In this document: one piece after another, positions 19,783-54,100 of the stretch
Layout of the letters: every line of letters starts with the position of its first letter
How positions within the stretch are numbered: position 1 is the stretch's first letter
Assembly: GCA_000708835.1 (NCBI GenBank)
Contig: DF237038.1
Span: 82,901-146,900 of the forward strand
Direction: 5' to 3'
Length of the DNA stretch: 64,000 nucleotides
Source of the DNA: Klebsormidium nitens
Taxonomy: Eukaryota > Plantae > Klebsormidiophyceae
Position numbers and translations under genes: made by a program
The notes under the pieces: model-generated
The model's database searches: none
Seen by the model: the letters and a program-made list of their open reading frames with translations, nothing else
Told to the model about the DNA's origin: nothing

Positions 19783-29370
<9,588 letters not shown>

Positions 29371-29582
29371 GTTGTCAACTTAACCATTATAGAGAATTTT
29401 CTCACGCACGCTTATGTATGCACTTCGGAGGCGTCTGCCGATCGTCCCGTGTGCGTGATTCCCTTGCTCCAATCGCTCTTGGAAAGTGTGTGAGTGTAAC
29501 CTGCCTGAATCGTTCTTTTGGTCTGCCGTGGGGCCGCTAGTTGAGCGCCCGGCCCGGCTTAGTCGGAGCCGAGAACAGCATA

Positions 29583-29775
29583 CCGGTAACTCTCGTGTGA
29601 CCTAACGGGCGTGTGACCTATGATACGAGTAATCCGGGCACTTCAAACTAAAAACCTAACCCAATTAATCACCCGCTCCGCACCCCAACCCACCCTAACC
29701 ACCATACCAACCCCAGCCGTCCCCCGGGTGCCTATCTTAGGTCACACGGCTCTTAGGTCACACGAGAGTTATCGG
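29583..29775 (+). mobile_element. Hairpin element copy 1 (conserved core, 43-bp inverted arms)
   Basis: Left arm ccggtaactctcgtgtgacctaacgggcgtgtgacctatgata (29583-29625) pairs with 29733-29775. Core: ctaaaaacctaacc..aatcacccgctccgcaccc..caccctaacc..ccgtccc. A direct repeat tcggag(cc/t)gagaacagc of about 16 bp sits at both flanks. Confidence 0.8.
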
Positions 29776-29839
29776 AGTGAGAACAGCTAGCCTAGCTGGT
29801 GCCAACGCCGCCCAAACCGGCCTTGGTCCGATGACGCTG

Positions 29840-30560
29840 GTATGACGTACCAAACAGGTACCTCACCGGCCATGCAATTTGATTACATACCGACCTACTA
29901 CCGGTACCTAGTTACCCCATTAATGGGGGTACCGTGGCCTACCGGTAGTACGGTACTGCCAACTTTCCCCATGGCGAGGTCTGGTCGGTACCGTACCTTC
30001 TTTCGTACCGGCTGTACTCCTAGGTACCGTATACGTACCTCTACAGGCATCGCGGGAATTTCAAAATTCCTGAACGCGGTCAGCTCTGGATATGACGAGA
30101 TATGAGTCATATGACTGTGGTTTACGGTATAAGGTACCTGCTCGTATGAGAGTCCAGACTCCAGACTCCAGACTCCATTCCATCTAGGTACCGTACCCAG
30201 TTGCTAGATGTTAACCCGGAATGTTCCATATGATTCCACCTTCAAAGAGCTCCAAGTGCGAAACTTGGAAATGAGGACGGCCGGCATCCCGGCCGTTATG
30301 TTGGTTACTAGTGGGTTGTGGTTTAATAATTCCATATGATCCCGTACGACAGCTGAAATGACCCGTACTCATGTGTGTACCGGACCCCGGTCCTGTCAAT
30401 TGAATCTCCGGCCGGGGCGGCTAGGCTGGACGGGCCTTCATCGTCGCCGCCCCAGGTAGTCGGGGACCGGCGTTCCATTAATGTCGTCACCGACCGTACA
30501 CCATAGGCTATACCTGGTGGCAAGTACTCACTGGAGTTGAATAAGAAGTGCGGTAGGCCA
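29840..30560. other. GTAC-rich island upstream of NCL, including a (TCCAGAC)n microsatellite at 30153-30177
   Basis: About 12 GTAC in 29846-30040 and several more up to 30530 (counted by eye). Confidence 0.7.
30277..30311 (+). mobile_element. Helitron-like 3' terminus
   Basis: GC hairpin ACGGCCGG-catc-CCGGCCGT, an 11-nt spacer, then CTAG followed by T. No 5' end or Rep/Hel ORF was identified. Confidence 0.45.
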
Positions 30561-31201
30561 ATCTATCCAGAATTTACCTGGATTCCCATGCAGGCTGCTC
30601 ACTTTGTGAGTTCGATCGAAGATGGGCCAGCCGCCGCCAGCGTCTTGAGATTGAGTTTCTTGTCGAACGACGACGTTTGGTAACTTCCGGCGATACTTCA
30701 CAAATGAGGGCGGCTGTAGCCGAAAGTGGAGCCTAAAAGCAGAGATGGCGACACCCGAATCGGGATACTAGATTCAAAACTGGGAAAGTGTGCACAGCTG
30801 ACACCATCATCCTGCTTCGCCAGTCTGCCGCGGCTTCTGTCAGTGTTGCAGTGTACAGGTACCTGTATTGAACCAATGTACCTACCGTTACGGCATCTGT
30901 ACCCAGGGCCACTGCGTAAACATTTCGCATTCCTTGAATCCTTGTCCAATGTCCTCCCTGCATGGGCTGAACGGTAGCTGCTACAGTAGCCTTGCAATGC
31001 CATACCTTATCGCACATTGCATGCAGGGCGGCTACCTATATTGAGATAATAGGTAGAAGGAGCTGGTAAGTCTATTGAAGATTGAACGCCGGTGGTTGGT
31101 GCAGAAGCGAAGGGCTGGCCAAAGAAAGCTAGAGGAAAGGAAGGGCTGGCTTAGAAAAGCTAAAGCAAAGACATTGCCGGCAGCTGCCTTGCATCAGGAC
31201 G

Positions 31202-34200
31202 ATGTTTTCTGCTGGCGGGGGCGGGTGTGAGGAAGCATATGGCTTCCTCCCGTGTTCAAACAGCCTTGCAGGCAGCGTCTCGCTAATTGTAGCTTATGGT
31301 TACATCCTCCTCCAGGGGGCCAATCTGATCTCAGATGGGAGCGAGCTGCTGCTTGAGGTGAGCTGGCATTGCCCCTCTTCAATATTTATATTCCTTCTCT
31401 GAGATTGTGCTGATGATCAGATCCCAATGCTGTTCTCAATTTTCAAGCACACTGGCGTCAAACTCTGCAGATTACCTGTGTGCATTTACCTCCTTTTCTT
31501 CCAGTGCTCATGTATGTGGAGGAGAGTCAATTGGATGACCATCTAAGTGAACTCGAGACAATTGGTCTATTTGCAGACTTTTTGAGCACGGGGAAACTTC
31601 CATGATGATTCCAAAATCTCTGAACACAATACTAGTGACCACATACATCAAGAATCTGAAAATCACCTTTCTTTGTAGACATGAAGACAAACTTTATTGT
31701 CTGCCAGGGTCAGCAGGCAGATCCTTTTTTTTTTTCAGAAAGCAAAGTGGCGCTACTTTACAATCCAAATAATCATTCCGTCATCAAGACCCTCTGTAAT
31801 GACGTACTGTCGCTACTTTTCCTATGATTAGGCCCTCAAGTAAGTCTCTAGCAGAGTCAACCAAGGGACCCTGTCATTAGCTTCTTTGATGAGGGGAATG
31901 TTAAGAGCGATAGCCTCTGAAAGAATTTTCCTCTGGTCCAATTGTGCTGCTCAATACGACGGACAACGAGGCACATGTTGGTTGCATTCAGAGCTCCTCC
32001 AATACCACATCTTTTAAGCTTAAGGTATTCTTTTTGAGAATGTCTCTCAACCTTGCTTTCTTGGGGGCAAGTGCATTGCAGCTTGAGTCAGGCATAACAG
32101 ATGCAATGCCGCGTTAGCTGTCAACATCTGCCTCAAAGTGACCTCTTGCTGAGCCTTTGTTGACTTGTTACGAGTCTGGATCTTTGAGATCAGGCACTAG
32201 AGCATGAGCGAGTGTTCCATCGATCGTTACAGAACGCACAATTTTTCGAGTTCCAGCAACTACTCTTTGATCAATTTTCGACCAGGACCTTTGCAGCTGG
32301 AATGTGGAAGGAAAGACAAGCGACAAAGAAAGGGGAAGAATGCATGTCGAACACAGTCCACGTCCTGACTGTTTTTGTCTTTGGCAGGTTCTGAACCCTG
32401 GCCTCATCGGAGGTCTCCTGCTGCCAATCCTGGGAGCTCTGCCAGACTGTGCTATCATTCTGATGTCTGGCATCGGGGGCACCGTAGAGGAGGCCCAGGT
32501 AAGACGGCGTCTATGCATCATATGCTTCTCGTAGCTTCTGCTCACTTCTTAGCATCCACCCCATTTGCATATGCCCCACCTGGCCCAACATCCCTTTCTG
32601 TCTGCTCTTTGAACTTTCCTCGTCCCATTCCCATCTTCTATTTCGATCTGTCAATTATACTTGGCGTCCGCTTTTCCGGCCAAGTCCCCCTGTCTGGTCG
32701 ACCAAGCTGCAGTTTGTAACTGCAGCTGGTGAATCAAAAGCTAGAGCGGCCATGTTGAATTCTGCAAACACATATCTACTTTAAAAGGACGGTCTAAAAG
32801 TACCACACCCCTGGCAAGTAACCTGCGGACCCGTTAAGACACTGGCTAGGCCCAGGAAAAGAATGAACATGACTGCAAGCCAGCCGCGCTTGGTCCACAT
32901 CATCAGCCCTTTGTGTTGTCTGCTTCACTCCCTCTCCTTCCTTTTCTCTTGAATCCTCTTGTGCCTGGCGTGATGTAGCATTTGTGCTTATTACAGACCG
33001 CATCTGAGCAGGCATCTGCTTTTCACCAAGCGTCAACCACATGAAGTTAATTTCTTACCTTTTCAATATGACAGAGACAGGTTTCACATCCTTAAATTTG
33101 ACCTTAATTCCGAGCGTACAGGAACAAGTTGCTGTGGGGGTGGGGACACTCGCAGGATCCACCATCATGCTGTGCACGATCGCCTGGGGGGGTTCACTCA
33201 TAGCAGGGCGTTGTGACATCGGCGAGAACGGGCTCGCTATTAACAGGAAGCTCACTAAGGGTTGGAGCCTGACGGAGACTGGGGTGTCAACGGACGTGTA
33301 AGTTGCAACATCGAAATTTTTGGTTAAGAACTTCAGCTTGAAAGTTGTCAACGTTCAGGGGGCTCAAGGGTCTAAGCTAGTTGCTAAGTGTCCAATCTTT
33401 ACGCAAGTGCCTCGTTGCTCTCCAAGCCTGGTCTATTGCTTTGCTGGGTGTAAGGAACATCATGATTCGAAGGCAGAAAGCCTCTGTCAATTGGTTCATG
33501 CTGACAGAAACATCAACGAGTTAGATAAGATGTAGTTTGTTTTGTGCCCCTGCCAACGATAAAGGCTTACATCAAGCCTCTTCCTTGCAGAAGCTGTCAC
33601 GATTCCTGTCGTACCTTTCCTTCTTTCAGTTTAATTCACAGGTTCGCTCGCCAGCGCAGTCCTCCCTTTCAGCACCTCACTCGTCCGGCACTGCATCATC
33701 CCTCCTCCATCCCTGCTTTTCGCCTTTGGTTCCATATGGCAACTACGACCTGACATTCTGCCAAGCAGGAAAGATTTTGCCTCTGCTTTACCAGCTCTAT
33801 GCTGAATTATCCTCTCTCCTTTCCATTCCAGCGAGACTCCCCGGAACGCCATCATAATGCTGGGAACCGTCTTCCTGTACCTAGTTGTGCAAGTCCCCGC
33901 CGTATTCGGCCACAACCGCGATCCGATCGTTGATCTGGTTGGCCTCGTCCTCGCAACGCTCACCCTCGCGGCGTACTGCGTCTACCAGGTAAGGCGCATG
34001 CATCAACAGTGGTTGGACTTCGGATGCTTTTTAGCGTGCCACTTGATGCGTTTTTGATGACGGTATCGTTTGACAGTCGTCGTGCTGCGAATCGACTGTC
34101 AGATTTCCTAGCCTTGTTTCAAAGATCGCGGTGGCGTCACACTCTTCTCTGAGATGTCGAATGTTCACCGGTTTGAATACCTACCAGTGCGTGGCATGTG

Positions 34201-37200
34201 CCTGTTACTCCTCGATGGATTGTTGGACCAAGGCACAGAGTCGAAAGACTGTCTTTTTATTTTAGCAATAGTAAGCCCTAGCATTAGTAAGCTCCAACAC
34301 TAACACTAAAAACCTAACCTACAAAATCACCCGCTCCGCACCCGAATCCACCCTAACCCCCAGACTAACCCTACCCGTCCCAGGCTGGTGAGCTTACTAT
34401 TGCTAAAGCTTACTATTGCTCAATTGAAGATTCTTGTCGAAAGCGTTGGTCTCTCGTGATTTTAGGGCAAATGTTCGGGAAGCCAAAGATAACTTACCTT
34501 CTGCACCCCTGCCGCTGAATCACAGCCGCTTGAACGTGGACGAGGATGAAAAGAAACCAATTTTCTCGTCTGGGATTGCTACATTGCTACTACGGCAGTA
34601 TTTTCAGGCTCTGGACGGGGAAGTAAATTCACCGGCGTGGTGTCTCATAGCTAGAAAAAGTTGGGTTTTCGCGCCTGCATTCAGAGACGTTCCTTTCGAG
34701 AAGCTGCGAAGCTGGCTCTGCAGACAAGATCCAAAGCGACTGCTTCATGGCTCTACGAGCCCTGAGTTGTATGACTTCTCGACAACTCTAAAACCGGATC
34801 GCCGCTGCCTTTGTCCGGACTGGTTAAGTTTTGTTTTGAGGGGCACGGACTTTGCCAGGCCATCCATCTAGCCGAAGGATACAGGATTTCTGGTTTGGAT
34901 TAAGTTTCCCTCTTTCTTCACCCCGACAAACATGTATGATCTGTATACGCTTCAAGGAGACTGCGTATCTGGACACGCGTTCTGACGACCAACAGGCTCT
35001 CCGAGGCTGCCCGATAATTCCTCTTTGACCAAAACTCTTTCCGCTCTCGTTGCAGGTCCTGGTTCCTGAGCTCCAGAAGCGGCGCATCCGTTTCGCGCGC
35101 CAGAACTTCCTGCGCCGGTATGCCGTGGGTCACGTCCACAAGCTAGCAGGTGAGGGTCGTCAAGCTCCTATCGATATTGGCTTGCCTCTTTGTTATTTCA
35201 ATAAAGGGGAGATATCGTTCTGACAACGACCGCGCTTCGGGCGACGCTGTACGACGCCGCTATGCGCGGCGGACTGAGCCGAGTCTGGCGGTTCAAATTT
35301 GCGACTCGCAATCGCCGATAAAACGAACAGTAACTCCTCATTTTCGCCCGCACCTGCAAAACACCCGACCTCTCGACCGCCCCGTGCGGCGGCGCAAATT
35401 TGGCACATACATATCGTCGAATTCGGCCGCGCTGCCGACCGATGACCTGACGTAACGCCGTAATGCTAAATGCCACCGCGGTATCAAGTCGACTTACCTA
35501 CGTTTAGGCAGTGTTTACGAGCAAACAGTACGCTGTGTCGAAGTCTTCAGACCTCTTACCCGCTTCTTTCCTTCGACACAAGGGAACTCCAAGGTCAGCA
35601 TATCGCCGATATTCCACCTTTCATAACCAAAGAGGCAAGCCACCGCCGCCACCAGGCGGCCTAACATGTTATCACTTTGCCAGTTACAGCTCAACTTATG
35701 AGTCACATTGCTCTAGCTAATGTTGAGCCGTTGATGTCGTCCAATCGTCGTTTGTGTGGTCCACGATCAAAAAAGTGGGGCCGGAATTTTGGAACTCGAT
35801 GCCAACCTGACGCATAAATTCTGTAGGCGCGGCAACTGGACCGCGGTCCCGAAAAGAACATAGGGTATACGAGATTCTAAACGACAGGTATACAAAGAGG
35901 AAGGAGCAACCGAGAGTCCCTGGTTGCTTGCCTGCTTTTGTATAAGCTGGACTTTCGAATGTGTGTCCCTTGGTTTTTGTTTACTTTATAGCCGTTGCTC
36001 TTGCTCACCCTCTCATCGGAACCGTTCAATTGGCTTTCAATACCGGTTAGTAGACGAAGCGCAAAAAACTGTCTTGGCTATTTTTCTGCATACCTACCCA
36101 GTGACTGTATGGTTCTCCGGCAAACGCGCTGAAATGTTCTTAGCCCAAAGCTCTTCCGCATGGTGGACTGCAAAATGTTGAGACGAATATATCCGAACCG
36201 GTATCGTCCTCATTTGCAGGTAGCACCGGCAAGGACTTGTACGACGCAAATGGCAACATCAATCCTCTTGTGCTCAAGGATATTTTCCGTATCATCGACA
36301 GAAATGGGGACGGGGAGATCGACGCTGATGAGATCAAGGTGCGTCATCGTTTTACGGGACTCAGATCGGCTTCAGCTTTACACTTGCCAAATACGACGGC
36401 CTGAAGAGCTGTTTGTTGTCCTGCGAATTGTTTCGGGCCAGGTTGCCTCAATCCAGGGGGTGCTTGAGATATGTTTGGCTGGCCACGAATGTGTGTTTCT
36501 ATCTACGTGCCAGGTTGCCTCGATCCAGATTGGATCCCTCGTGATATCCCCTGGTATTGTTCTCATTGAGCCATGGTCAAGCCAAAAGTATCATACGTCC
36601 TGTGCTGACTTTGCTTGATCACTCCAATCATTTTTAATTTCACATGTTGTGGTCGCGGGAGTGTTGTCAGCGCTCAATATTGTGTCGTGAAGCGCTATCA
36701 TGGGCCGTAAGCCAGGCCGATCAACCACCTAGAGCATTCAACTTCAGGAGACATTATGACATCGTCACGGGCATGTCCCTCTACTTGCCGAAAAGTCCGT
36801 TTCTGGCAAATTTTTCACCCAGACCTTGCTTCTGGTTGAAAAAGTTCTCTTGACCTCGGATTCATGATACGGGTTTTGTGAACTACCAGGTCGAGAGAAA
36901 GACGTGGACGTCTTATGGTTTCCGAGAAGGCCGGATTCCAGTGTGTCAGTCAGTCCGCTGAATGTCTTCCCTCTTCAGGCTATAATCACAAGGGAATTTA
37001 CAGAGGTAAAACTCATGGATTGACCTGGGTTTTGGCGAAGGCTTTCATCAACTCCCATGTGTAGGAAAAGACATGGACGTTACATGCGTTGCCTTCCAGT
37101 TCGTTAACCTGTCCGGTTTGAAATCGTCTATTTCCTTTTCTCTACCTCCTCTTCAGGCGATGGTCACGAGAACGTCTTTCTCCGCCAAGAACTACCTTGT

Positions 37201-40200
37201 CAACGAGAGCGACATGGACTACGTGTAGCCGCAAAGAAATCCGCCTCCAATTCCGCAACCGCTTCGCTGACAATCCTCTCTTTTTCTATGTAGGCCACGG
37301 TCACGCGGATGTCTCTCTCCGCAAAAAACTACGAGGTCAACAAGAGCAGCATGGACTATGTGTATGTGCCGAGAAAATCGCCTCCGTTGTGTGAACCACT
37401 TTGTTGAGAAAGCTCTCTTTTTCTGTCCAGGCCATGGTCACCGGAGTGTCTCTCTCCGCCAAGAACTACCAGGTCGAGGAGAGTGACGTGGACTGTGTGT
37501 AGCCGCCGCGATATTCGCCTCCAGTTTTTAGCCAGTTCGTTAAGACTCCTCTTTTCTTCTGTTCAGGCCATGGTCACTCTCCGCTAAGAACGACCAGGTC
37601 GCGAGAGCGACTTGGACTATGTGTAGCCGAAAAAAATCCGCCTCCAATGTCAACCACTTTGCTGAGACTCCTTTTTCTTCTCTTCAGGCCATGGTCACCG
37701 GAATGTCGCTCTCTCCCAGGAACTACGAGGTCAACAAGAGCAACATGGATTATGTCTGTAGCCATTGAGGGAACCCCCTCCAGTAGGTCATTATACTTCA
37801 TTATTACTTCGCTGAGACTCCTCTTCTCTACTATTCAGGCCATGGTCACGGAAATGTCTCTCCTTACCCAAAACAACCAGGTCAAGGAGAGTGAAATAGA
37901 CTATGTCTAGCCGGGAAAATCCGCCTCCAGTAGGTCAACCTCCTTCGTTGAGAATCTTCTCTTTTTCTGTTCAGGCCATGGTCACCGGAATGTCGCTGTC
38001 CGCCAAGAACTACCAGGTCGAGGAAAGTGACGTGGACTACTGGATGAACCAGTTCGACGAGGACAAGGGCGGCAGCATTGGCGAGGAAGAGTTCGTCAAG
38101 GGCATGTCCCGCTGGGCCAGCGCCGTAAGCCTTTTACTTGTTTCTTTCTGGGATCCGCTTCTCAAGTTCTGTAGGTTTGGCTCCCAGGATCTTTGGGTTC
38201 GCTTCTCAGACTTTTTGGGTTTCGCTTTTCGGATTCTTTGGCTTTGGCTTCTTAGATTCTTTGGGTTCCGCTTCTCAGATTCTTTCGGTTTGCCTTCTTA
38301 CTTCTACTCCCGGTGGAGAAGCTGGTGCGTTGTCTTCTGTTTGGAGACCCCGTGCGCGCCTTTTCATTCTGCCTGCAGCAAACGGTTTCCGTGCAACCTG
38401 TATGTTGCTTAGTCGTATTTGCAGAGCGGACGCGTTTTCGAGAAGCCAGTCGGGGCCAAGAAGGGCGAGACACAAATAGAGACATCAACCAGGGGCTGAC
38501 TTCTGAATGATGTGATCTGTCCGCTGACGTCATCCCTTGCTGTCGTCGAGAGTGAGAGCCGACCTTTGAAAGTTGCATCGAGGAAAAGGCGCTTCCGCCT
38601 ATCGAGAGGGAGACGCGAGCCGCCTCCTGAAGAATGCATAGCTTGCTGACGTCACCTTCCTGCTGACGTCACTCAGGTGACGCCCAACCGCACCACCAGC
38701 CAGGCGGACCTCGACCTGGAGCAGGCGCTCCTGCCCAACGGCGCCGGGGCGGATGACGACGACGATGACGACAGCGACGAGCAGAAGGAGCCGCCCAGCA
38801 AGCAGGCCATTGCGCTGAAAGCCACGATGCTGCTCGTGCTTGGGACGGCGCTCATTGGAGTCTTCTCCGACCCCCTGGTGAGTACTGCCATTCCCTGGAA
38901 AAGTACAGGTCGACATAATCTCCATCTTTGCTTAGTTGGATCTAGGGAGGACTCACATCTGTACAACCTGGACCCGCCCTTCCTAGTTTTGAAGCCCCAC
39001 ACCTTTTCCGCGGGTCGAACCGATTACCCATCTTCTCTCCCGAGTCTTGACGCGACCCTTAGCTTATTGTGTTTCAGATCCTTGTCATAACCCTTGAGCA
39101 TACAAACCCCCTCGTCTCTTTTAGGTCGCCCCCATTACCATCTTCTCCCGCAAATTCTCATCTCAGAAAGCCTGGTCGTTAGCCCACGAACCAATAAATA
39201 CCCTGGCCTCTTTTCAGGTCGACTCAATCACCCATCTTCTCCGGCGAGCTTGACGCAACCCCTCGCTTGATTTACATCCTTGTCGTAACCCATGAGCCCA
39301 AAACCCCCTCGTCTCTTTCAGGTCGCCCCGATCACAGTCTTCTCCCGCAAACTCTCATGTTAGAAAACCCGGTCGTTTACTCATGAACCCAAAACCCTCG
39401 CCTCTTCCGCAGGTCGACTCGATCACCATCTTCTCCCGCGAGTCCTCCATCCCGCCGTTCTTCGTCTCGTTCGTCGTGACCCCCTTCGCATCCAACGCAA
39501 GCGAGCTGGTGTCGTCCCTCCTCATCGCCTCTAAGAAGCAGTCCAAGAAGATCTCCCTCACCTTTGCGCAGGTGACGCTCTCAGATCGTCTCTTTTGTGA
39601 TTGTCCAAGGCAATCTCTTTCCTTTCCTTTCCGGTCTGGCTTTCTTCGTCGATGCAGAATAAGAGCGCTTGGTCGGTCCATCTCTGTTTCTCTGGTTCTT
39701 TAGGTTTGGCCCAGCACGCCCAAGACTCGTCTATGGAAGTCGCCTCTGTAAATCCCGGATATGGACAAAAGTTGTTTACTTATCCTCTCTTGGGTCTTTC
39801 TCGTTCCGCTCTTCTCCGCTCATTCTCACCCTTGGGAATGCGTGCTTCTTTAAAATGCTCACCAGGCCAGTCCTGTAGGTGATCGGCGCCCGTTCGTGCT
39901 CATCATCTGCTTTGAAATAGAATCGATTCTTCCGTGCCGTCTCCCACTTTCCATGTTCTCTTATTCATCACAAGTTGTCCGACGCTTGCCTGCGCTTAAG
40001 CTCCTTCTGGACCTCGTACTTGCTTGCATCTCGCAATTCCTTTCCCTCCAATATCGTTATACTTGATCCAAGCAGCTGGTTTCAGAACCCACGACGCTGT
40101 TCGGCCTCTATCACTCTACTTGTTTGCTTAAATCCTTGGAATCATGCCAAAGAACTGCGTGTGCATTGCGGGTGACCTTCTTTCCCATACCTTTCGCCGT

Positions 40201-40888
40201 TGACGGTCCACGACAAAGCAACACTCTGAGCTCAGCGCCAAAAGCTGACGTACAGCTTCCATTACCTAAGTTTTCACTCCCGTCACTGTCCGCAGGTGTA
40301 CGGAGCGGTGACCATGAACAACTCCCTGGCGCTCGGCGTCTTCTTGGCGCTGGTCTTCTTCCGGGGCCTCATGTGGGACTTCTCGTCCGAGGTGAGAAGT
40401 TAACCATCTGTGGTTTGCACTTGACTCACGTGACTTTCGCGGCGGCTTCGATGTCCTGTAGCTTTCCAGCACGTGCGAATCGCAGCGACTCGAGCAGCTG
40501 CACGCGGGCTTCTTGGTCGCTGGACAAGGCGGCAGTGGTCCGAGGCCGTCGCTGACGTATGAACCACCTGGTTAGACCATGCTGTTTTTGACCTCACCAC
40601 GTGGCTTCGCCAGTGTATCCTTTTGGCCTAACCACATGGATTCACCAACTTTTCCTCCGCTTGGCCGGGTTAGCTGACAATGTACCTCCGCCTAACCACG
40701 TAGCTTAATCATTCCTACTCATGTGCCTGACGCAGGTGACCGTCATCATGGTGACTGTGCTCAGCCTCGGCATCATGGGCTCTCAGGCACGTACGCTCAA
40801 GCTGTGGCACGCTTTCGTCATGTTGGCCTTCTATCCTCTGTCGATTGGGCTCGTGGCTTTCCTAGATTACGGCCTGGGTTGGCACTAG
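31202..40888 (+). CDS. NCL: Na+/Ca2+ exchanger-like protein with EF-hands (EF-CAX/NCL family)
   Basis: Exons 31198-31357 (CEEAYGFLPC..ISDGSELLLE), 32388-32498 (PGLIGGLLLPILGALPD), 33122-33297, 33832-33988, 35056-35149, 36220-36338 (EF-hand DRNGDGEIDADE), 37975-38124 (DEDKGGSIGEEE), 38677-38877, 39413-39571 (PFASNASE), 40296-40391 (MNNSLALGVFL..WDFSSE), 40736-40888. A phase-compatible upstream exon 30588-30679 is possible. Confidence 0.93.
34261..34423 (+). mobile_element. Hairpin element copy 2 (same core, unrelated 34-bp inverted arms), inside an NCL intron
   Basis: Left arm tttagcaatagtaagccctagcattagtaagctc pairs with gagcttactattgctaaagcttactattgctcaa. Core: ctaaaaacctaacc..aatcacccgctccgcaccc..caccctaacc..cccgtccc. 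Confidence 0.8.
36760..37910 (+). repeat. Array of NCL exon-head echoes (period about 136 bp)
   Basis: AG-bounded copies at 37157-37222, 37294-37359, 37431-37496, 37567-37620 (deleted), 37688-37753 and 37839-37904, each followed by GT. Older decayed remnants lie at 36760-37000. Confidence 0.92.
38150..38300. repeat. About 22-bp minisatellite downstream of the donor of the second NCL EF-hand exon
   Basis: About 6 copies of gcttctcagattctttgggttc-like units. Confidence 0.8.
39000..39360 (+). repeat. Four echoes of the NCL VDSITIFSR exon head, arranged as a higher-order A-B dimer
   Basis: gtcg..atcaccatcttctcccg-like heads near 39014, 39125, 39218 and 39322. Copies 1 and 3 share one spacer type and copies 2 and 4 share another. 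The real exon starts at 39413. Confidence 0.85.
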
Positions 40889-42354
40889 GGCTGCTAAATC
40901 AAGTAACGCATTCACCTTTTTGGAGCGTCGTTTACATTGTTGTTGCGTTTGAGATGGATTGCGCACGGGGTTGCCAAGTGCATATGCGGCAGTGTCGGCA
41001 CATTGTGCTGGTAATGTTGACGAGCTTTTGTCCAAAGCTCAAAAAAACACCAAAAAGGTTCCCAGGCAGAAGCTCGATAAAGGTGTGTATTTAGTCTGGT
41101 TAAATGTTCCTGAAAGTTTTTCAATAAAGTGTCGGTAGGGGCAATGGACCATCTCATGTGGGAGTTAGTAGAAGAAACTTTTTGCGACGCCCCACGTTAA
41201 GTGAGCTGTTAGGCTAAACCAATCCTTTGAAAGGATGGGAGTTGCGTTATGAACCACCTTACTTCAGCAGATGACCATTTGCAAGCTTGATAATCAGCTT
41301 GCAAGTTTTCAGAGTTGACCATCGGTAGGTCGGAACGGCCTACTTCCTCTAAAAGAACAATTTATTATTTATTTCGGCAAGTTATTTTCACCAACTGGTT
41401 GTCAACTTGCCACAGGCTGCATGTACTCAATATCATGCGCAAGTAGCTTGTAATTTTCGAGCAAGGACGTCCAAGATTCGTGGAAATACATGGCGCTCAT
41501 GTGTGAAGGTGCGCAACCTATATTTTGCCGCAATCCTTGTTATTTGGACCATCTTGAGAATGGCCCGGCCTGATAGGTGACCGTTGTTGCGGGATATTTA
41601 TAGGTTGCATGCATGCGTTTGATCCATGGCAGTGACATGCTATAATTTCGGCCCACCTACGTTAGTATCGCAACAACTTAGACTAGCTATGGCGCTAATA
41701 TGCTCGGTAGAGGTTGACCTGAATGATTGAAGCTGCCAGATTTCTTTCTGAGCATGATGTGCGATCTTGAGTCACACACCATCTTGGCGCTCGCTTGATT
41801 ATTCCAAGGCAAGTAATGATCTACGCGTATAAAAATGGGTGGCTTCATATACGAATTGCATTTGAAGCTACTGTAGGCCGCCGGTGTGTTGGAATTGCCT
41901 TTGCACAAGCTACCTATGGTGGGTCCCGGCCGAGTCGACTTCGACTCAAACCGCGACGAAAATGTGGGACCCGGTATCAAATTTCGTCAGTAGTACCGGC
42001 GGTTCACGTTACGACGACTCGGACTTCCGTAACATGTACCCAACGAGTACTTTCAAAATCTTGCTCGGCCGTAACCGAGTGTCATAATGGTGTAACAGAG
42101 TGTTTTGATTTACACTTTGACAGAAGCATAAAAATGCCACACTATGAGGAGGCTTATGCAGCTTATAGAAACCTTTGACAAGCAAAAAAAAATGTTGAAA
42201 GGGCGTCATTAGAGGTCCTTTGAAGCTCCAACATCATGTTTTGTTCAGGACAAATCTCAAGAAACAGCATAGGAGGCGCAAAGTGGGCCGCCATTGTTGA
42301 TTTTTGCAGAGCGCCTTTCCTTACACTGCTCTATCAAATTCCTGCACTCTCCTT

Positions 42355-42580
42355 TCAGTCTGGGTACCGCGGTACTCCTGCGTGGTTCAAGTCGGAAGTT
42401 CCGACCAAGACCATAAATTTCATAATCGATGTACGCGCAGACTCGAGCGGTACCGTACCTCCGCATAGTACGCACTTGACCGTTGATCGACGTGTCAGAA
42501 AAAGTTCAATTCATGAACTCAGACCTGATTCTCAAGTACTGCCGAGTACGGTCGTCAGTGCCGCGTACACAATTCGTCGC
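42355..42580. other. GTAC-rich island
   Basis: About 9 GTAC in about 215 bp (counted by eye), upstream of the second kinase gene. Confidence 0.6.
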
Positions 42581-43973
42581 GACACGTAACACCGGTGTAA
42601 GAAATTTGAGACCGGACCGTCGCGCGGTCGATACCGTCGAGACCCACCATAGGTAGCTTGTGTGAGCAACTCACTTAGGCATACTGCACATGCGCCATAA
42701 CTTATATATCAAAATGTGCCAATGCAGAAGGGAACGGGCTCATTCAGTGACCCTGCAGCTAGGTCGGGACAAATATCGAGTATTGATGTTTGATGCTTGA
42801 TGCTTGATTACTTGATGCATGCCAATGATGATAAATTTGTGTCCCTCACTTAATGGCTTGTGGATATCATTGTGGATGGGGACCCCGCGAACTCATCAAC
42901 TTACTCACCCACGCCGCGTTCTTTCAGCTTCAGCTTACGATTGCGTAGGGTGTGGCGTTCATGCAACAACAAAGCTGTTTGTTTATTTGTGAATGCGCTT
43001 GAAGCCTTGACTAGTTTGAGTGTCACGGAATCAGCATGCAACATGTTGTGATCACCAAGGAGTCAAGGACGGGGCTGACCGGCGGAGAGGGATCATCCTG
43101 GAGTTCTGGATTTGTGACGGCCTCAACCTCGCCGCGCAATCCGCATCGTTCGACGGTCAATATAGAGTTAAGGATCCAGTGGCCTATCGTAGAGCCGTCG
43201 ATTGGGCCGACTCTTTCGGGCGGGGACCTCCGGGGAAGTAGGGGCTGGCTCTTTCAAAGCCGTCAACTTTGCCGGGCGCTGCCGGGAGGACGAAACCCAA
43301 AGCAGTCAAGGGAAGGCAGGCTTTTTGACGGAACCCTAACGAACCGTCATCGGCCAGTTGCAATCAGCTAAAGACTCAGACTTGCGCTTCAATTTCAAGA
43401 TTCATGAGCTCTGCTCTGATTCTGAGAGAAAACGTTTCAAACCCCGCAGCATTGCAAGGTTTCCACTCCTCTGATGTTTCTCCTCTGTTGGATGCCTTGG
43501 ATGCTGCTTGGATGGCAGAATCATTAGTACTCAAAGACCAACAGTTCTGCTTGATGAAGACTGCAGCGCCAGCTCTTTGAACCGTCTTGTTGAAGTCTGC
43601 TGGCTTCCGAAGTCTGCCAAAGATTACCCTCATCTCTTGACCTGTATCCGTTGAGCTTTCTTCAATAACCTGCTCTCGTACAGCCTTCACAGCAAAGTGT
43701 CCGTAAAGTAGTGTCAATCATCAGAGGCTTGCTGTAAGAAGGCTCTTACAAGAGTCAGCAAGCAAAGGAGGCCTGCAACTGGGATGTTTTTGAAAGGAAG
43801 GTTCTCTTGATAACTGCGTGCTCAGACGAACCTTCATATTTTGCACCTAAGCTGACTGGAACCAGCCTTAGACTCTGTTTGAGTCCAACAAAATGGTTGC
43901 GAAGCGAAGGAGAGGTTTGAAGCAGGACATTTGTTGGTTGGAAACTGGGAGAGAGAACCTATGCTTGCCAGCA

Positions 43974-46900
43974 ATGACACTGAAAGGGGGGACTGCACTT
44001 CAGGTGCTTTTGTTGTGCGTTGCTTTTTGGGGCGCTTTGGTCAGAGCGACTCCAGTAGAGCGGTGCAGTGGAGACAGCGGGGCTCAGCTATTTGCAGAGG
44101 TGAGGGCTGGGAATGGGATTGCTCCGAAGAACCGAGTCTTGCTAAACACCAAGCCCTGTTGAAGTGTGTATGCTTGTACCACGAAGTGAGTGGTGGTTGT
44201 CAAAAAGGACAGTAAGATCTACTAGCTGCCCCGAGAAAGCTTTAGAAAGTGGTCTGAAAAGGACATGGCAAAAGGCCTCGTCGATAGGGAAGGAGACTAA
44301 TGGAAGGTTCCCCGAAGAAAGTTAGGCCGATCTCTCGCCGTTTAAAGGACAACTGAAGCGTTCAGGCGCCAGAAAGGCTTTGATTCCAAGTCACAAAGGC
44401 CCGTTCTTTGATACTGATTCATTCATAGTGCGCAATACGTTGTGCTAGATGGCAGCATGGGCTATTCTTTGCATTCTGTTATCAAATGGGAAAATGCTGA
44501 ACAGCACTCACAAGCGCTAGAAGCAAGCCCCAAACTTGCTCTGATCAGCTGCCCTTGGCAAAGCAAGCTGTAAAGACTGCATGGGCGCCCGCATCTATTT
44601 AGTCACTTACTGAGGCCCTGTATTTTTACAGGTTGGAGGGATTGACAGGGACTCGCAAGTGTCGCACAGCCCTCCCACAGGGCTCTCCGTCTGCTCGAAC
44701 CACAGCAGTCCAGATTTTTTGGCAAATAGCTGCCCTTATGATGCGAGCGCAAATGCAGAGGGAGGAAAAGTAATGCAGAATCCCAAAAGGAGTGATTCAT
44801 TAGATGAGGGCGCCTTGCCGCAGGAGGAGAGCAGAATGATCGTAGGAGAGGTGAGGTTAACTCCTGGGACTTACCTGCTGAATTCTGTACTTTTTGGAGG
44901 CAGCTTTTGGATATTGTTGTGCCCCGCGATAATTTAATCTTGTGTAAGGAGATTGGGGAATGAGCGACTATGGCTCTTGAGGCTTCAGGATGCCCATGCA
45001 ACGTCGGCTCAACGTAGAGATTCGAAACGCAACAACAACAGGCCGAGCAACCTTGACACCCGCTTCCTGAAAGTCAGTCCTTTGACCTGCTTTCATTGAA
45101 CATGCAAATCAGTCACCAGAGGTTAATCTACATTTTCGTAACTTGTTGACGTGATGCTGGGATGGCCAGGAGCATAAATATGGTAATTTCCAGAGTTAGT
45201 TTCAGTAGCAAAGTTTCATTTTAAAGTCTTCTCTGGAACTATGGGATGTTGTGATTTTGAAAGGAAATGCCCTCCTCCCATGGAGGAAACCAGAAAAACG
45301 AGAAAGAAAAATGACTTTTTTTATTAATCGGATTCTTTTGATCTTGCAGGCGATTCGAGAACTGGGCGACGGCCGATGGGGCAAGGTCTACGAGGCTGAG
45401 GTCAGCGGAGTTGGGCGAGCCGCCGTGAAGCTCCTGAGTGACGCCATGATAGAGATGGAAAATGATCTCGAGATGAGCTACCAAGACTTTCGGACTGAGG
45501 TATGCAAGGACTCATATGCTCCCGTTTTTCATTTTAGATTGACCCCTCTCCTCAGTTGAAGACCACTTTCCTGACCCTTTTAACCGCAAACTCAAGAGCT
45601 AGAAGCCTTTCAATGAAACAAAAAGCCGCAGTGCTCGGTATATCTTTGTATTGCTCTAAAACCTCCAACGCACCCTCATGCTCGACTTCGAGTACGTTGT
45701 TGTTAAGCTTATCAAATGTTCAGAAGAATGCAATCCCTTGTTTCTGATTACTGTACGCTCAATCCAGCAGACGTCACCAAGCGCATATTTTCTCTTTACA
45801 CAGCTCCGTTTGACGGACTCTTGCTCTTAAGCACCACTCTAGAAGTGTCCCAACAAACGCCGTTTGAGTCTGTCATAAAAAGCTTTTATTCCGCGTTTAG
45901 CGCTTGGCAGCGGCGGCAAAAGCAATGCCTGCTTCCCATTATCTCCTTTTTCCGTTTCCACAACGGACCATTCTCAGCTTTCCCGCAGGCTGAGCGCTGA
46001 AAGGGGTGTCGCTCAGACTCCCTTTCCTTGAAGAAACACTTCCCCTGCAACAATCAGTGGTTTTCGCAGACCAGCAACAGCCGCCATGTTGGCTACTCAC
46101 TCTCACTGACACCATTATTTCTTTTTCTACTTATCTGCAGGCCGAGCTCCAGCAGCGGTGTCAACATCCGAACGTCGTCAAAGTGTTTGGGCTGGCCCCG
46201 TTCCCCTCGTGGGGAAACGCCACGTCACGCAGCTGGGGCCGTCCCGACGGTGCAGTCGTCATGGAGTTCATAATAGACGCGCAAGAGTTGAAGGATATGT
46301 TGGAGCAACTGAGGTAAGCGCGCGCCTTCTCCGGGGTTCCTTCGCTTTTATCTACGTTTAATCTGCAAGTCCTCCATTCCTATTTCGTCTTTCCTTCTCG
46401 TTTCCAGCAGTCTTCGTTCGGTATCGCCTCAGTTCGAATTAACAAAACGGGGTCAATCGGAAATTCGCAAAAGTTTCTAAAATGTCGGTGGAAGTAACGA
46501 AAGCGCGGCCTCTTGCGGATTCGTCTGCTTTCATTCCTTCCTTTACAACTTCTCCCAGTCTCCTACTGATCGGCAATCTCTGATCTGCAACTCTTCAACG
46601 GGCACTCGATTTGGAGCTCAAAGAATCAGCAAGAGCTCCTTTTATCCTGCTCCGCTCAAACTTCTGTCTTGGGAGCCGAAGCAACGATGGAATCCCGCTC
46701 AATCTTCGGGCGAGCGACGTCGGAGCTTCTCTAACCCTGTTCCGCTCAACCTCTGTATTGGCAGCGGAAGCAACGGCAAATTCGGCTCGATTTCCGGCCG
46801 ACCAGCGTGCGGAACATCCAAGCTCTTCTCATACCGTTCCGCTCCATCCTTTGTTTGTGGCGGAATTTCGCCTGCCGTTCGGGCGAGCAGCGTGCGGGAC

Positions 46901-49303
46901 GTCCGAACTCCTCAAACCCTGTTCCGCTCACCCCTTTGTTGCAGCGAAAGCGACGGCGGAATTCCGCTCGACTTCCGGGTGAGCTGCGCGCTGGACGTGG
47001 CACGTGGCCTGGCGCACGTGCACGCGCAGGGGGTCATCCACTTCGACGTCAAACCGGAAAACATTCTGGTGGACCGGCGAGGCAGCTGCAGGGTGGGTTA
47101 GCAAACTCCCCCGCTTAACCCACTTTTTCTGGCAGTTTCTGAAATTCGTTTCCCATTTGGTCGCATGGGTTGTCGGCTAACCACTCTTTAGAACAACGTC
47201 GAATACGTGTGCTTTAGGAAGTCCCATGCCGAGGTTGGTTCAATAACTGTCCTGGCAAAAGCTAGGGTTTAAAGCGATTTTGTTGAACGGCAAGGGCGAT
47301 GCAGGATCGGTTGACAAAAGTTCTCGGTTGAAATAATGATTGGTGTCTATGAAGCTCGAATCAGCCGGCCGACAGGTAAATCTCAAAAATGACGGTGAAA
47401 AGGCTCTCGTGGACCAACAATCCGGATATAAGCAGCCGAAGTCTCCTGTAAGCAGCCGCAATCTTACATAAGCAGCTGCAACCTTGTGAAAGCAGCCCAA
47501 ATCTGCATAGAAGCAGCCCTCGGCTTATATACGCAGCCGTAGTCTGACATAAGCAGCAGCGATTCCGTGTATATATGCTGACCGGCGGATCGTTCTCTGC
47601 GCAGTTGAGCGACTTCGGAGTGGCGTGGGATCCCAAGGGGGCGCCCATACGCTATAAGGGCAGGGGAAGCATAGCGTATATGGCCCCGGAGCTCATGCTC
47701 AGCAATAAGCCGGCGAACACCAAGGTAAGAGCCTGGATCGTGTGCGAGCTTTTACAAAGGGGAGACAACCCGAATTCCTTATCGTCCTGCATTCTTTCTC
47801 GGATAGAGCTTCGTGATTGAAATGCGGTCTGCTATTGTAAAGTCGATTACAGCAATTTCCTGCTTTCTTCCAGTAAGTCGAACTGGAGGTGCTTTGCTGA
47901 CCGGATAGTTTAGGCGTGAGATAAGCAGAGGAAACTGAACGAGAAGTAAAAAGGTTAACAGAGAAGCCTAGGCCACTTTCGTATCCCGCCTCCATGACCT
48001 CATTGTAAATTTAATTCCAAACCTGAATGCTTCATGACGGACGACGATGCGTTGGACGCATGACACGTGTCACCGTTTCCTTGTGCCAGGTGGACGTGTA
48101 CTCTTTTGGAATCCTCATGTGGAAGCTGCTGATCGGGACGGACCCTCACGACGGGATGGACTATGAAGAGATCAAAGGTGGGTGTCGTGTGCTCAAAGCC
48201 CAGTATTTGCAGATCTGCGGACGTCAGGAGAGAACCTTTTCATCGAATTTGTGATTTGTGCAACCTTTTCGTAAGGAAAGAGGGGTTAGGTTCGGGTCCA
48301 AAGCTCCTTTGGACTCGTCCGATGGTTTGAGCTGAGCAAGGGGTGCTTATCTCAACCGACTGAAAAGAGGATCCCTCGGGCCGTTTCTGACCGTCCCTCA
48401 ATTGAATTCTACTGTTCGAAAGCGCATTGGTCGAGAAGTCCCCTCGAACGAAACATGTCCTAAGACTGCTTCAGAAGCGTTCGAAAAGGTTGAACCCAAG
48501 AAACCCATAATAATCCGAGATAATATTGAGGTAACCGCATTGGGACGGGTAGAGATCGTCTGGTAGTTAGGGTGGGTGCGGAGCAGGTACCCTTTGGGTT
48601 AGGGTTTTTATATCAATCGGACCTTATCATTATCTTGACTCATTATTATCCTTCTTGAGTTTTGAGTCGAAAAGTCCTGTAAAGCATGGCTTGTAGCTGA
48701 GAAGGGAGTTTTTTGAAGTTGATCCTGTTGGCCAAACAGCGCCATAAGCCACGTAGGGCGACTGCGTATAGTGTCGGTTGGGCCAAATACGGGGGCCGGA
48801 CGGTCGCTTCTTATCAGAAGAAAACGCTGAAACAGGTGGTTGTTGCCAAGGCATGCTGCCACGTTTCCATTCAAACCCACTCTTTTGAACTCTTCTTAAC
48901 ACGCTATTTTGGGTCACAGTCTCGAATTCGCTGTTCCGGACTCCTGTTGACAACACATTTTCCTGGCTCTTCATTCAAGACTGCTTTGGACCCCTGTTTC
49001 AAAATAGTACCTTTTCGAGCTGTCTCGAACTCAACTCTCTCGGTCCCCACTTGCTTTGGGGTGCACTGTTTCGGACACATTGGTTCGAACAAACTATCTC
49101 GGACACACTGTTGCGGACTCACTGTTCCGGACGCCACCGCTGCAGCCACCGTCCAGAGGAAGGAGCGGCCGCCAATCGACGCCGCGTGGGCACGGCGCGA
49201 GCCCGCATGGCACGAGCTGATGACGCAGTGCTGGCGTCAGCCGCCTCATGCGCGGCCGGCCATGTCGTGGGTCGTTAAGTCCCTGGAGAAGATGCTGGAA
49301 TGA
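43974..49303 (+). CDS. Non-RD TKL-type protein kinase with an N-terminal signal-peptide-like segment
   Basis: Exons 43974-44099 (MTLKGGTALQVLLLCVAFWGALVRA), 44632-44850, 45350-45499 (LGDGRWGKVY..AAVK), 46141-46313 (HPNVVKVFG..VMEF), 46945-47092 (HFDVKPENILV), 47605-47724 (SDFG..GSIAYMAPE), 48090-48177 (DVYSFGILMW), 49146-49303. All are phase-consistent. The first two exons are less certain. Confidence 0.85.
46670..46920 (+). repeat. Three echoes of the ESDGGIPLDFRV exon head (period about 90 bp)
   Basis: gaagcaacgatggaatcccgctcaatcttcgggcgag, ggcag|cggaagcaacggcaaattcggctcgatttccgg and ggcggaatttcgcctgccgttcgggcgag, versus the real gcag|cgaaagcgacggcggaattccgctcgacttccgggtgag at 46945. Confidence 0.8.
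47445..47570. repeat. About 20-bp minisatellite (taagcagcc core, about 7 copies) just upstream of an acceptor
   Basis: ataagcagccgaagtctcctg/taagcagccgcaatcttaca/taagcagctgcaaccttgtg/... Confidence 0.8.
48497..48657 (-). mobile_element. Hairpin element copy 3 (core in reverse orientation, third arm sequence), inside a kinase intron
   Basis: Reverse-complement core: taaaaaccctaaccc..acctgctccgcaccc-accctaac..ctacccgtccc. Degenerate arms caagaaacccataataatccgagataatattgagg and ccttatcattatcttgactcattattatccttcttg. Confidence 0.7.
48900..49140. repeat. 14-bp minisatellite running into the last acceptor of the kinase gene
   Basis: actgtttcggacac/attggttcgaacaa/actatctcggacac/actgttgcggactc/actgttccggacgc, then cgctgcag|. 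Confidence 0.75.
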
Positions 49304-51162: not shown

Positions 51163-54100
51163 TTACCGAGTACCGTATCTCCAACCACTTCGCGGCGCAA
51201 GAAAGAGCAAAACTATGCCTCTGGGGCGTACCTCCATCTCACAGTTCTTAAAAAGAGACAAGCGGTGGCTCTCACTAGCTCGAAACGGTGGCTCACCCGG
51301 ATTACGCAGCAGAAGCAGCACTTGGGTCACATTGTTCAGCAGCTCAAACGGACGGTTGATCCGGACGTCCCGACAGGCATCGGTCCAAGTCGCCAGACCA
51401 CCTTGCTCCTGCGAACCAGGTTCCGGAGCGGCTTCTCGCTCTGATGACGTGGCAAGATCAGCGCGCGCCGTCTGGCACGGGATGTGGTCATCACCGCAGT
51501 GGCCCTCCGAAACTGAGCCAGGCCGTGGGCTAACGGATGCAGACGTTCCGGCCACCACAGTGGGTTCCGAAGGAAGGGAACTCCGCTTTGATTCCCCGGC
51601 AACAGGGGCCGAAACTCGGCCGGAATCGTACTCCGGTCTCGCGAGGCTGCTGCGGCTGGCTACTTGCGCAGCCGATGCAGTCGAAAGCGGGACCCCGGAA
51701 CAGCTTCCCGGGAGGTCCCGGCAGGCTGGCTGGCGGTACGGCGTGAAGTCGCTGGTTGAGACCCGCGTCGCCTCAGAGAGCTCGCGCCGATGCCCGGGGA
51801 TACTCAACCGAGCGCCTGTTCGTCGCACGGTCTCAGGTTCCCGTCTCGATTTGTTCCCGGGAGGAGCAGGCCCAGGGAACCGGGGAACGGGGGGAATGCT
51901 CGACAACCGGCGGGGCGTGGGGCGCAGGACCGGCACGGGCGGTTTTCTGGAGGGCAGTGTGAACGTGGGCTGAAGACGGGCCGGTAAGAAGGGCTCGAAC
52001 GGGTTGTATGTGAGAGTCGGGCTCGCCAGGGGCTGCCCCGGTTGGTGGGAGGCGCCCGGGGGAAGGCTCAATCGGGGCGGTTTTGCGGATCCCGAGGGGG
52101 GAAGGCTTAACCGGGGCGGTTTTGCGCATTCCGAAGGGGGGCCGCTCATTCTGGGAGGTTTTCCGGACCCGGAGGAAAGGTTTTGACTCGACGAAGACTG
52201 CGCAAGCGGTACAGGTCTCCGGAAAGCGCTCGCGGGTGCGGACGGACGCTGCCGGGGGGGGAGGGGCACCGGGGAGAGGGGCGGTCGGCCGCTGTGAGAG
52301 GGCTTCTCTCTAGAGTCCTCTTCACAGATCTTAAATCCCGAGCGCGTCAGAAATGCGTCGGCGAAGTCGTCCGAGGGGAGCCGTACGGGACGGCTGCCAC
52401 GTGGCAGCTCNNNNNNNNNNNNNNNNNNNNNNNNNNNNNNNNNNNNNNNNNNNNNNNNNNNNNNNNNNNNNNNNNNNNNNNNNNNNNNNNNNNNNNNNNN
52501 NNNNNNNNNNNNNNNNNNNNNNNNNNNNNNNNNNNNNNNNNNNNNNNNNNNNNNNNNNNNNNNNNNNNNNNNNNNNNNNNNNNNNNNNNNNNNNNNNNNN
52601 NNNNNNNNNNNNNNNNNNNNNNNNNNNNNNNNNNNNNNNNNNNNNNNNNNNNNNNNNNNNNNNNNNNNNNNNNNNNNNNNNNNNNNNNNNNNNNNNNNNN
52701 NNNNNNNNNNNNNNNNNNNNNNNNNNNNNNNNNNGGGACGGCTGCCACGTGGCAGCTCGACGGAGCGTCGCTTCGGGGGGGGCTCATTTGGGGAGGCCGT
52801 TGGCTGGGAGCTTTGACGGGGCGTAGAGAGGGAGTCGTCGCTTTTCCGCTTTCGGTACTGAACCGTGCGAGTGGTTGTAGAAACACCTGCCAAAGAGGAT
52901 GATGATTGAGAACAATGCCTGAAACCAGCTGCCAATGTCTATAAAGATCATTCAGAAAGCCTTGTAAGAGGGCGCTCCTATTCACGACTTTGGTTGCCGA
53001 TCCGATTGTCTCTATGAATTTAACATCAGCCCGTTAAACCATCCTGTAGACTGGACGATCTGCAGACTGCAGGCACCGTTGATGTGTCCCTTTGATGGAC
53101 CGCAGAAGAACCAGCATGCACGGGCAGCTTTTCTGGTTTCAGCAATCACTCGCCCCTCCATACCTTGCCCGGGGTAGCCGCAGGACGCAAACCAGAAGTG
53201 CAAAGGATGAGGCTCGCGAGAAAGTAAGGTGCACAAACCTGGAAACTCCCCTAGCCGCTCTTGCAAGCCTGGGATACCCAGCCACAGGTACGCAGGTCCC
53301 TGCGAGGCTTGGAACTTGACGACCAGGTGCAGGCAAGAGAGGATGTTTGCCACGTCATACAGCCGTCGTCGGATCGCTGATAAGATGAAAAGATAGTCAG
53401 GGTTTGACGATGGAGGTGTGTGCAACTTTTGGATTTGCATCAGAAGATAAACTTTTGATGCCAAAAGTATCCTGGTCAATTTCTTTCGGCGCAACATTCT
53501 TGTTGAACGTCTCAGAGGCACTCTGTGAGGAGCTAAGCGCGGTTGCCGCATAACTCACATTGAACACCGTCGTTTAAGCCTCCCAAAACGGCGGAAACCG
53601 CCTTGTTGAGGAGAATGACCTGCCCCTGCATTTACAGAGGCGAAACTCGCTTCCATCATTCCTTACCGGCAAGAAACAACATCAAGACTTTCACCTGAAT
53701 GAATGCAGTAGCTTGATAAGGCTATACTGTAGACTGTAACACAGGCGCAATCTCCTTCCAAGCGGCGGTACTTCGCGAAAGGTGCTGAGGAGCATAGGAC
53801 CGGAAGATCCAAGACTTCAAGGCTACGAAGCAGAGGCCGACTCACCTGATCCGCAAGAAAGACTCGCACGAACTCCTCGCTCAGAACCTTCAGCGACTTA
53901 AAGAGCCGCGTATCTGCAGAATTTGAGATTTGTCAACTGCCCTTCTTTTTGGAACTTCCAAGCAATACCTTCATGAAGATATGGGGCAATAAAGCTCTTG
54001 ATAAAAAACTAGTCAAGGCAAAGTGGGGAACCTTGATGAATATAGCGTCTTTAAAAGCTGTCCCTCACCTCTGCGTGGCGCCTCCGTCGCTGAGGCTTCT

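Follow-up and report, generated by a model that had tools for sequence, protein, structure and literature searches.

Three short sequences in a 64,000-nt stretch of the Klebsormidium nitens genome (assembly GCA_000708835.1, contig DF237038.1, positions 82,901 to 146,900; the whole stretch is called the window below) raise the question of what kind of element keeps its interior and changes its ends. The three sequences, designated c1, c2, and c3, share a C-rich core, and each core is bracketed by inverted arms that are unrelated from copy to copy. Miniature inverted-repeat transposable element (MITE) families are defined by, and thought to be mobilized through, their terminal inverted repeats (TIRs). 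We found exact direct repeats directly outside all three copies, and four copies of a private site within each. It is probable that c1, c2, and c3 are old insertions of a non-autonomous cut-and-paste foldback/MITE family of the Mutator/Foldback or hAT type, in an "inside-out" variant. On present evidence the family is an unusual member of a known transposon class; the elements are not telomere structures, and they do not correspond to any known RNA gene.

Target-site duplications, core, and arms

The three copies are flanked by target-site duplications (TSDs) of 9, 8, and 8 nt, respectively. The match was 9/9 in c1 and 8/8 in c2 and c3, in which the ninth base was mismatched, so that the repeats are compatible with a duplication of either 8 or 9 bp. 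The distances between the TSDs and the outermost arm units were nearly equal on the two sides (14/14 nt in c1, 15/14 nt in c2, and 14/16 nt in c3). The chance rate was estimated from 20,000 random placements in the window with 30-nt flanks. An exact repeat of at least 8 nt occurred in 1.6% of the placements and one with symmetric offsets in 0.5%; the probability of finding it at three of three sites is therefore about 1e-7. Since symmetric exact TSDs are this rare by chance, these results indicate that the arms and the core were inserted as one piece. A staggered cut of 8–9 bp is the signature of a cut-and-paste DNA transposon. Given the young-looking sites of c1 and c2, a duplication of 8 bp is mildly favored over one of 9 bp, on three copies only.

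Reading from the outside inward, each element consists of a terminal segment of 14–16 nt, two private sites, a short linker, and the C-rich core, followed by a second linker, the same two private sites in inverted orientation, and the other terminal segment. The positions of the features are listed in Table 1, in which element sizes are given from terminal segment to terminal segment. A preliminary description of this DNA had placed three copies at these sites, and both the sequence and a profile of the core bore it out. The positions of the extents given there hold and their lengths do not, as the terminal segments (14–16 nt) and the TSDs (8–9 bp) extend beyond the arms. The elements are non-coding, and no open reading frame (ORF) of note was found in c1, c2, or c3. 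Being small, non-coding, present in several dispersed copies, and flanked by TSDs, they have the properties that define a non-autonomous DNA transposon, or a MITE in the broad sense.

The core was searched for with an nhmmer profile built from the three cores. The profile matched exactly c1, c2, and c3 in the window, with E values of 6e-19 to 7e-17, and the next-best match had an E value of 6.3. Moreover, a 19-base core pattern, GCTCCGCAC-N0-8-CCACCCTAAC, gave 3 matches in the window versus 0 in 100 shuffles. The pairwise identities of the cores were 0.85, 0.72, and 0.73, and the maximum for shuffled sequences was 0.65. The shared and conserved nature of the core was thus upheld; its length, previously put at about 75–90 nt, was measured as 71–75 nt. 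In public metagenome, viral, and prokaryote collections, the core pattern hit 62, 3, and 37 stretches, respectively. The likeness of these stretches to the core profile did not extend past the pattern (best E value 0.03), and all of them were chance matches. A word search with the 56-aa frame that runs through the c1 core was blank, which is a weak negative since the search covers only proteins of 31–98 aa.

The C-rich strand of the cores contains 4–8 G in 71–75 nt and is unable to fold on itself because it has nearly no G. Two further properties of the core were considered and rejected. A canonical G-quadruplex motif was present on the opposite strand only in c2, with a relaxed motif in c1 and none in c3, and G-quadruplex formation is therefore not a conserved property. 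A division of the core into two diverged half-units of ~39 nt looked plausible by eye and in the alignment and was no better than in shuffles (p 0.12–0.86).

In regards to telomere likeness, between one and three CCTAAC/CCCTAA words, all of them isolated, were found per core. Among the three copies only c3 has the exact telo-box AAACCCTAA, and the window contains 14 CCCTAA words versus about 31 expected from uniform base composition. Words of the CCCTAA type are not enriched in the window, and the telo-box is not a conserved feature of the copies. No tandem telomeric repeat was found in the elements, which sets them apart from interstitial telomeric repeats. Furthermore, the product of the Klebsormidium telomerase has been reported as TTTTAGG and not TTAGGG (PMC9498494).

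The arms behave in the opposite way to the core. Each element has its own site of 12–14 nt, two per arm (CGTGTGACCTAA in c1, TAGCAATAGTAAGC in c2, and GATAATAATGAG in c3), and each site was found four times across the 64 kb, solely inside its own element. In c1, the two inverted arms are complementary at 88% over 43 nt; the corresponding values are 85% over 39 nt for c2 and 73% over 26 nt for c3. The identity of the arms between copies was 0.45–0.56, which is at chance level (shuffle mean 0.48, maximum 0.60). Comparison of c1, c2, and c3 revealed no convincing shared terminal motif and no convincing pattern common to their units. TIRs conserved among family members, as expected of a MITE family, are therefore absent, the arms being at shuffle level. 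These results agree with the contrast drawn in the preliminary description, in which a kept core and unrelated arms were recognized as the reverse of a normal MITE, and "exchangeable arms" is a fair description. The arm units had no counterpart elsewhere in the 64 kb and were thus not derived from neighboring DNA.

The sites recur with a period of 16 nt in both arms of c1 and c2 and in one arm of c3. The other arm of c3 has a 13-nt period, which arises from a 3-nt indel. Two tandem units per arm had been correctly recognized, as had the period in c1 and c2, and the spacing of about 13 nt that was assigned to c3 as a whole applies to one arm only. c3 is the oldest and most decayed copy; besides the low complementarity of its arms, it folds no better than shuffles.

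For c1 and c2, the outer 46 nt of the left arm were aligned, ungapped, with the reverse-complemented right arm. The sites contained 3 mismatches in 52 positions, whereas the spacers and terminal segments contained 15 in 40 (Fisher p 3e-4), and the terminal 14 nt of c2 showed hardly any complementarity. Because the sites matched at 49/52 positions versus 25/40 elsewhere, the constraint is on site sequence and not merely on pairing. Uniform decay of a once-perfect inverted repeat would not yield this contrast between sites and spacers, and a requirement for pairing only would leave the tandem duplication of the site in each arm unexplained. The simplest reading of the sequence is that master elements were selected for four copies of one sequence, which would be candidate docking sites for a sequence-specific multimeric protein. 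A scan of the 64 kb for two tandem sites with two inverted partners within 400 nt returned only c1 and c2, both of which bear the core, and a general inverted-repeat scan of the window revealed nothing further of this design.

Table 1. Positions of the three elements and their parts in the window (numbering of the 64,000-nt stretch).
Feature	Position	Strand	Remarks
c1 element	29580–29778	+	199 bp; folds as a long hairpin
c1 left TSD	29571–29579	.	GAGAACAGC, exact 9-nt direct repeat with 29779–29787; 14 nt outside the outermost unit
c1 left arm	29594–29621	+	two CGTGTGACCTAA sites, 29594–29605 and 29610–29621, 16 bp apart
c1 core	29649–29723	+	C-rich strand, C 38 and G 4 of 75 nt; nhmmer E 6.7e-17
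c1 right arm	29737–29764	-	CGTGTGACCTAA sites inverted, 29737–29748 and 29753–29764
c1 right TSD	29779–29787	.	GAGAACAGC
c2 element	34248–34435	+	188 bp; within NCL-type (EF-hand cation exchanger-like) gene, + strand
c2 left TSD	34240–34247	.	GTCGAAAG, exact 8-nt repeat; ninth base differs
c2 left arm	34263–34292	+	two TAGCAATAGTAAGC sites, 34263–34276 and 34279–34292
c2 core	34307–34381	+	C-rich strand; nhmmer E 5.7e-19
c2 right arm	34392–34421	-	TAGCAATAGTAAGC sites inverted, 34392–34405 and 34408–34421
c2 right TSD	34436–34443	.	GTCGAAAG
c3 element	48489–48666	- (core on minus strand)	178 bp; last intron of + strand kinase gene
c3 TSD	48481–48488	.	TCGAAAAG on + strand, exact 8-nt repeat with 48667–48674
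c3 low-coordinate arm	48506–48530	+	one GATAATATTGAG site (48519–48530) and a degenerate outer site, 13-nt spacing
c3 core	48542–48612	-	6-nt deletion relative to c1 and c2 (alignment); nhmmer E 4.6e-17
c3 high-coordinate arm	48623–48650	-	sites GATAATAATGAG (48639–48650) and GATAATGATAAG (48623–48634), 16 nt apart
c3 second TSD copy	48667–48674	.	TCGAAAAG

Relation to known transposon families

Mutator/Foldback elements generate TSDs of 9 bp (range 8–11), and the FARE and Hairpin elements of Arabidopsis are likewise of the Mutator/Foldback type with composite TIRs. Composite arms of tandem subrepeats, which characterize this type, are present in all three copies (two units per arm, with a 16/13-nt period in c3). 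MITEs of the hAT type have an 8-bp TSD and short conserved TIRs starting with YARNG. A TSD of 8 bp agrees with the repeats of c2 and c3, and the repeat of c1 is compatible with it; the termini are unshared, and the YARNG motif is absent.

The arm architecture resembles that of Tm1, a Mutator/Foldback family of root-knot nematodes, the composite TIRs of which consist of ~14-bp tandem repeats with non-complementary terminal motifs, and which has TSDs of 8–10 bp, most often 9, and MITE-like members (PMC3169594). Several traits are common to Tm1 and the elements in the window: arms composed of 13–16 bp tandem repeats, outer terminal segments that need not pair, a TSD within 8–10 bp, a middle domain that is not palindromic, and MITE-like members that are small and non-coding. 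They differ in the part that defines the family. In Tm1 and other foldback elements the repeat motif defines the family and the middle varies, whereas c1, c2, and c3 have the middle in common and each copy has a repeat motif of its own. Moreover, the elements in the window have only two units per arm, and no link to a Mutator-like element (MULE) transposase was found.

In regards to the conserved interior, the closest likeness is with the CMITEs of the coral Acropora, which have a conserved 75-nt interior and family-specific TIRs (PMC2872659). Both are MITEs of ~100–200 bp that occur in introns, with an interior of ~75 nt that is better kept between families than the TIRs, and the authors of that study suggested that the interior has a role in transposition (PMC2872659). 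The CMITEs have TTAA duplications, piggyBac ends (CC[C/T]T), and TIRs of 13–14 bp in a few families; in contrast, the elements in the window have TSDs of 8–9 bp, no common terminal motif, and composite arms of 40 nt with four iterated sites. Assignment to the piggyBac-type CMITEs was rejected, as the TSDs are GAGAACAG(C), GTCGAAAG, and TCGAAAAG and not TTAA, and the likeness is limited to the conserved interior.

Exchange of TIRs and interiors by recombination has been described for the "heteromorphs" of maize Mu (PMC10401008). Mu thereby shows that in Mutator elements the TIRs can evolve and recombine independently of the interiors. Unlike the arms described here, the Mu TIRs are 150–250 bp long and fall into five related clades, and the exchange concerns autonomous, large elements.

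On this basis the following course of events may be proposed for the probable cut-and-paste family. The four sites would serve as docking sites for a sequence-specific multimeric transposase that pairs both ends, and the transposase would cut with an 8–9 bp stagger, which would fit the DDE enzymes of the Mutator/Foldback or hAT type. The copies would stem from different lineages, each mobilized by transposases that have diverged in the sites they recognize. As for the core, it may act in cis as an internal module, either in the manner of an enhancer or through binding of a host factor, and it would have been either kept in all lineages or passed between lineages by recombination. Long RNA hairpins in host transcripts would be a by-product, because all three copies lie in transcribed gene regions. 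The preliminary description regarded the invariant loop as the functional part of a cassette, and the loop may have that role. Among the candidates listed there, a core carried by different DNA-transposon families comes closest, given the symmetric TSDs of 8–9 bp.

Several points weigh against this explanation. No autonomous element with matching sites was seen, and the explanation is not parsimonious, in that the three unrelated sites would call for more than one cognate transposase. The TSDs of the three copies fit both 8 and 9 bp. The copies have no common terminal motif, unlike the CMITEs, in which CC[C/T]T is kept, and the role of the core in transposition is one that we infer.

Alternative explanations

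The folding of the elements bears on the possibility that they act as hairpin RNA genes, in which stems of ~40 bp would be diced to small RNAs specific to each copy and the unstructured C-rich loop would act as a shared platform for processing or protein binding. The fold of c1 gave z-scores of -7.7 as DNA and -8.8 as RNA, and that of c2 gave -5.7 and -8.5, respectively; c1 and c2 would thus be predicted to form very stable RNA hairpins if transcribed. The location of all three copies in transcribed gene regions, 3' of a stop codon or in introns, and a loop that is almost free of G and would not fold on itself are consistent with such a function. However, the DNA fold of c3 (z -0.6) was not better than shuffles, and the core is found in both orientations with respect to the host gene (sense in c1 and c2, antisense in c3). 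Rfam 15 gave nothing at the gathering score in the window, and nothing for c1 and c2 at E values up to 1; the sole weak match (E 0.88) falls outside c2. Furthermore, TSDs mark insertions rather than conserved genes, the 16-nt tandem unit is unrelated to a 21–24 nt register, and the arm units have no second match in the 64 kb. We consider it unlikely that the elements are RNA genes, although hairpin small-RNA precursors were among the candidates of the preliminary description.

The second alternative is that the machinery reads the invariant core, or the hairpin or cruciform shape, and that a single enzyme serves all copies. The arms would then drift or be rewritten, for example by copying one arm from the other in each round. 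One common core with arms at chance similarity, the lack of a shared terminal motif, and the position of the core in the hairpin loop of all three copies would be explained in this way. In contrast, pairing alone would preserve neither the tandem arrangement of the sites nor a higher match in the sites than in the spacers and terminal segments, and the terminal 14 nt of c2 are essentially non-complementary. We know of no eukaryotic TSD-making transposase that recognizes a core or a hairpin shape, which also counts against this alternative, and we regard it as improbable.

A division of recognition between the two parts is a further, quite improbable possibility. The invariant core would represent the identity of the element and be read by one conserved protein or host factor, and the end sites would be replaceable four-copy "addresses", rewritten by transposition or read by a guide from the hairpin transcript of the element itself. 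If true, such split recognition would have no described equivalent among the ways in which eukaryotic DDE elements transpose.

It is very unlikely that the elements are nested, that is, that pre-existing palindromic foldback MITEs of many unrelated families each received the core in their center as an independent mobile or inserted piece. The core fills exactly the non-palindromic center of the hairpin, and the arms are unrelated between copies, as a nested origin would predict. However, the 64 kb contains three core-bearing elements and no coreless four-site element or other short-range inverted repeat of at least 20 nt of this kind, and the core itself has no bracketing direct repeat or other insertion signature.

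Finally, an insertion of telomere-like sequence related to repair or telomerase, with arms built from local DNA, is extremely improbable and has only the few CCTAAC/CCCTAA words of the core in its favor, as the 64 kb around the elements contains no further arm units, the TSDs are symmetric and of fixed size, telomeric repeats do not occur in tandem, the count of CCCTAA words in the window is below that expected, and the telomerase product of Klebsormidium differs; this candidate of the preliminary description is thus disfavored.

Host genes and significance of the family

The window has a eukaryotic character: ORFs are sparse, introns split the genes, and the genes are of the streptophyte type (GH31, ANTH, CH-domain protein, EF-hand, and kinase genes). 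Searches with the host genes used their exons one at a time and by reference. The large ORFs of the window include no transposase, and no tRNA genes were found in it. c1 lies about 210 nt 3' of the stop codon of a + strand kinase gene, and c2 lies inside the NCL-type gene. A second kinase gene hosts c3, in the ~950-nt intron that separates the exon encoding DVYSFG from the last exon.

The TSDs of all three copies end in AG on the gene-sense strand (GAGAACAG(C), GTCGAAAG, and TCGAAAAG), and TCGAAA(A)G is common to those of c2 and c3. The AG ending, seen in three cases only, could reflect the choice of target, or it could reflect better survival of insertions that are compatible with splicing. 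It is also a feature of introners, which are transposon-derived introns, and c3 has the borders AAG/GT...AG/ in common with them. On the gene strand c3 reads AAG/GTTGAA...TCGAAAAG/, and the GT/AG borders would excise the element and one TSD exactly, yet it is situated inside a larger intron. Removal of c2 with one TSD copy (196 nt; 34112–34871 without 34248–34443) produced a single open frame of about 190 codons. Relatives of the downstream 145-aa part of this frame were not found in Pfam, in the word search, or among 1.84 billion representatives. An introner and one TSD copy together make up exactly the intron of a coding exon; among the three candidates, c3 lies in a larger intron of ~950 nt, c1 lies 3' of a stop codon, and c2, the junction frame of which has no detectable relative, may have split an exon.

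Other features of the window were also recorded. A GC-rich gene with two long overlapping open frames (23587–25227) is located 3' of the ANTH-domain exon, and its public relatives are P0001 (82% identity to the window; Logan assembly, 9.5-kb contig) and P0002 (62–70% identity; JGI, 56-kb contig). A long single exon at 2811–4421 (- strand) probably belongs to a kinesin-14 gene of the KCH type, as it matches the calponin-homology domain weakly, contains a coiled coil, and ends in the manner of the neck that precedes a kinesin motor. Positions 52393–52756 correspond to an assembly gap filled with N, both edges of which carry duplicated sequence. A 182-nt "perfect palindrome" returned by repeat scans in this region is an artefact of the N run, as are runs of X in ORFs.

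The present analysis adds to the preliminary description the TSD statistics, the terminal segments, the contrast between sites and spacers, the lack of conservation of the G-quadruplex motif and the telo-box, and the CMITE precedent. A family that keeps its interior while swapping its ends challenges the rule that MITEs are defined by terminal repeats, and the coral CMITEs are the only close published precedent that we found. The copies are situated in introns or beside coding sequence of ordinary genes, and their hairpins of ~40 bp in transcripts may affect splicing or the production of small RNAs in a host lineage close to the origin of land plants. With four short sites at 16-bp phasing and a 75-nt core, the family offers a compact natural system for studying which parts of a foldback element a transposase reads.

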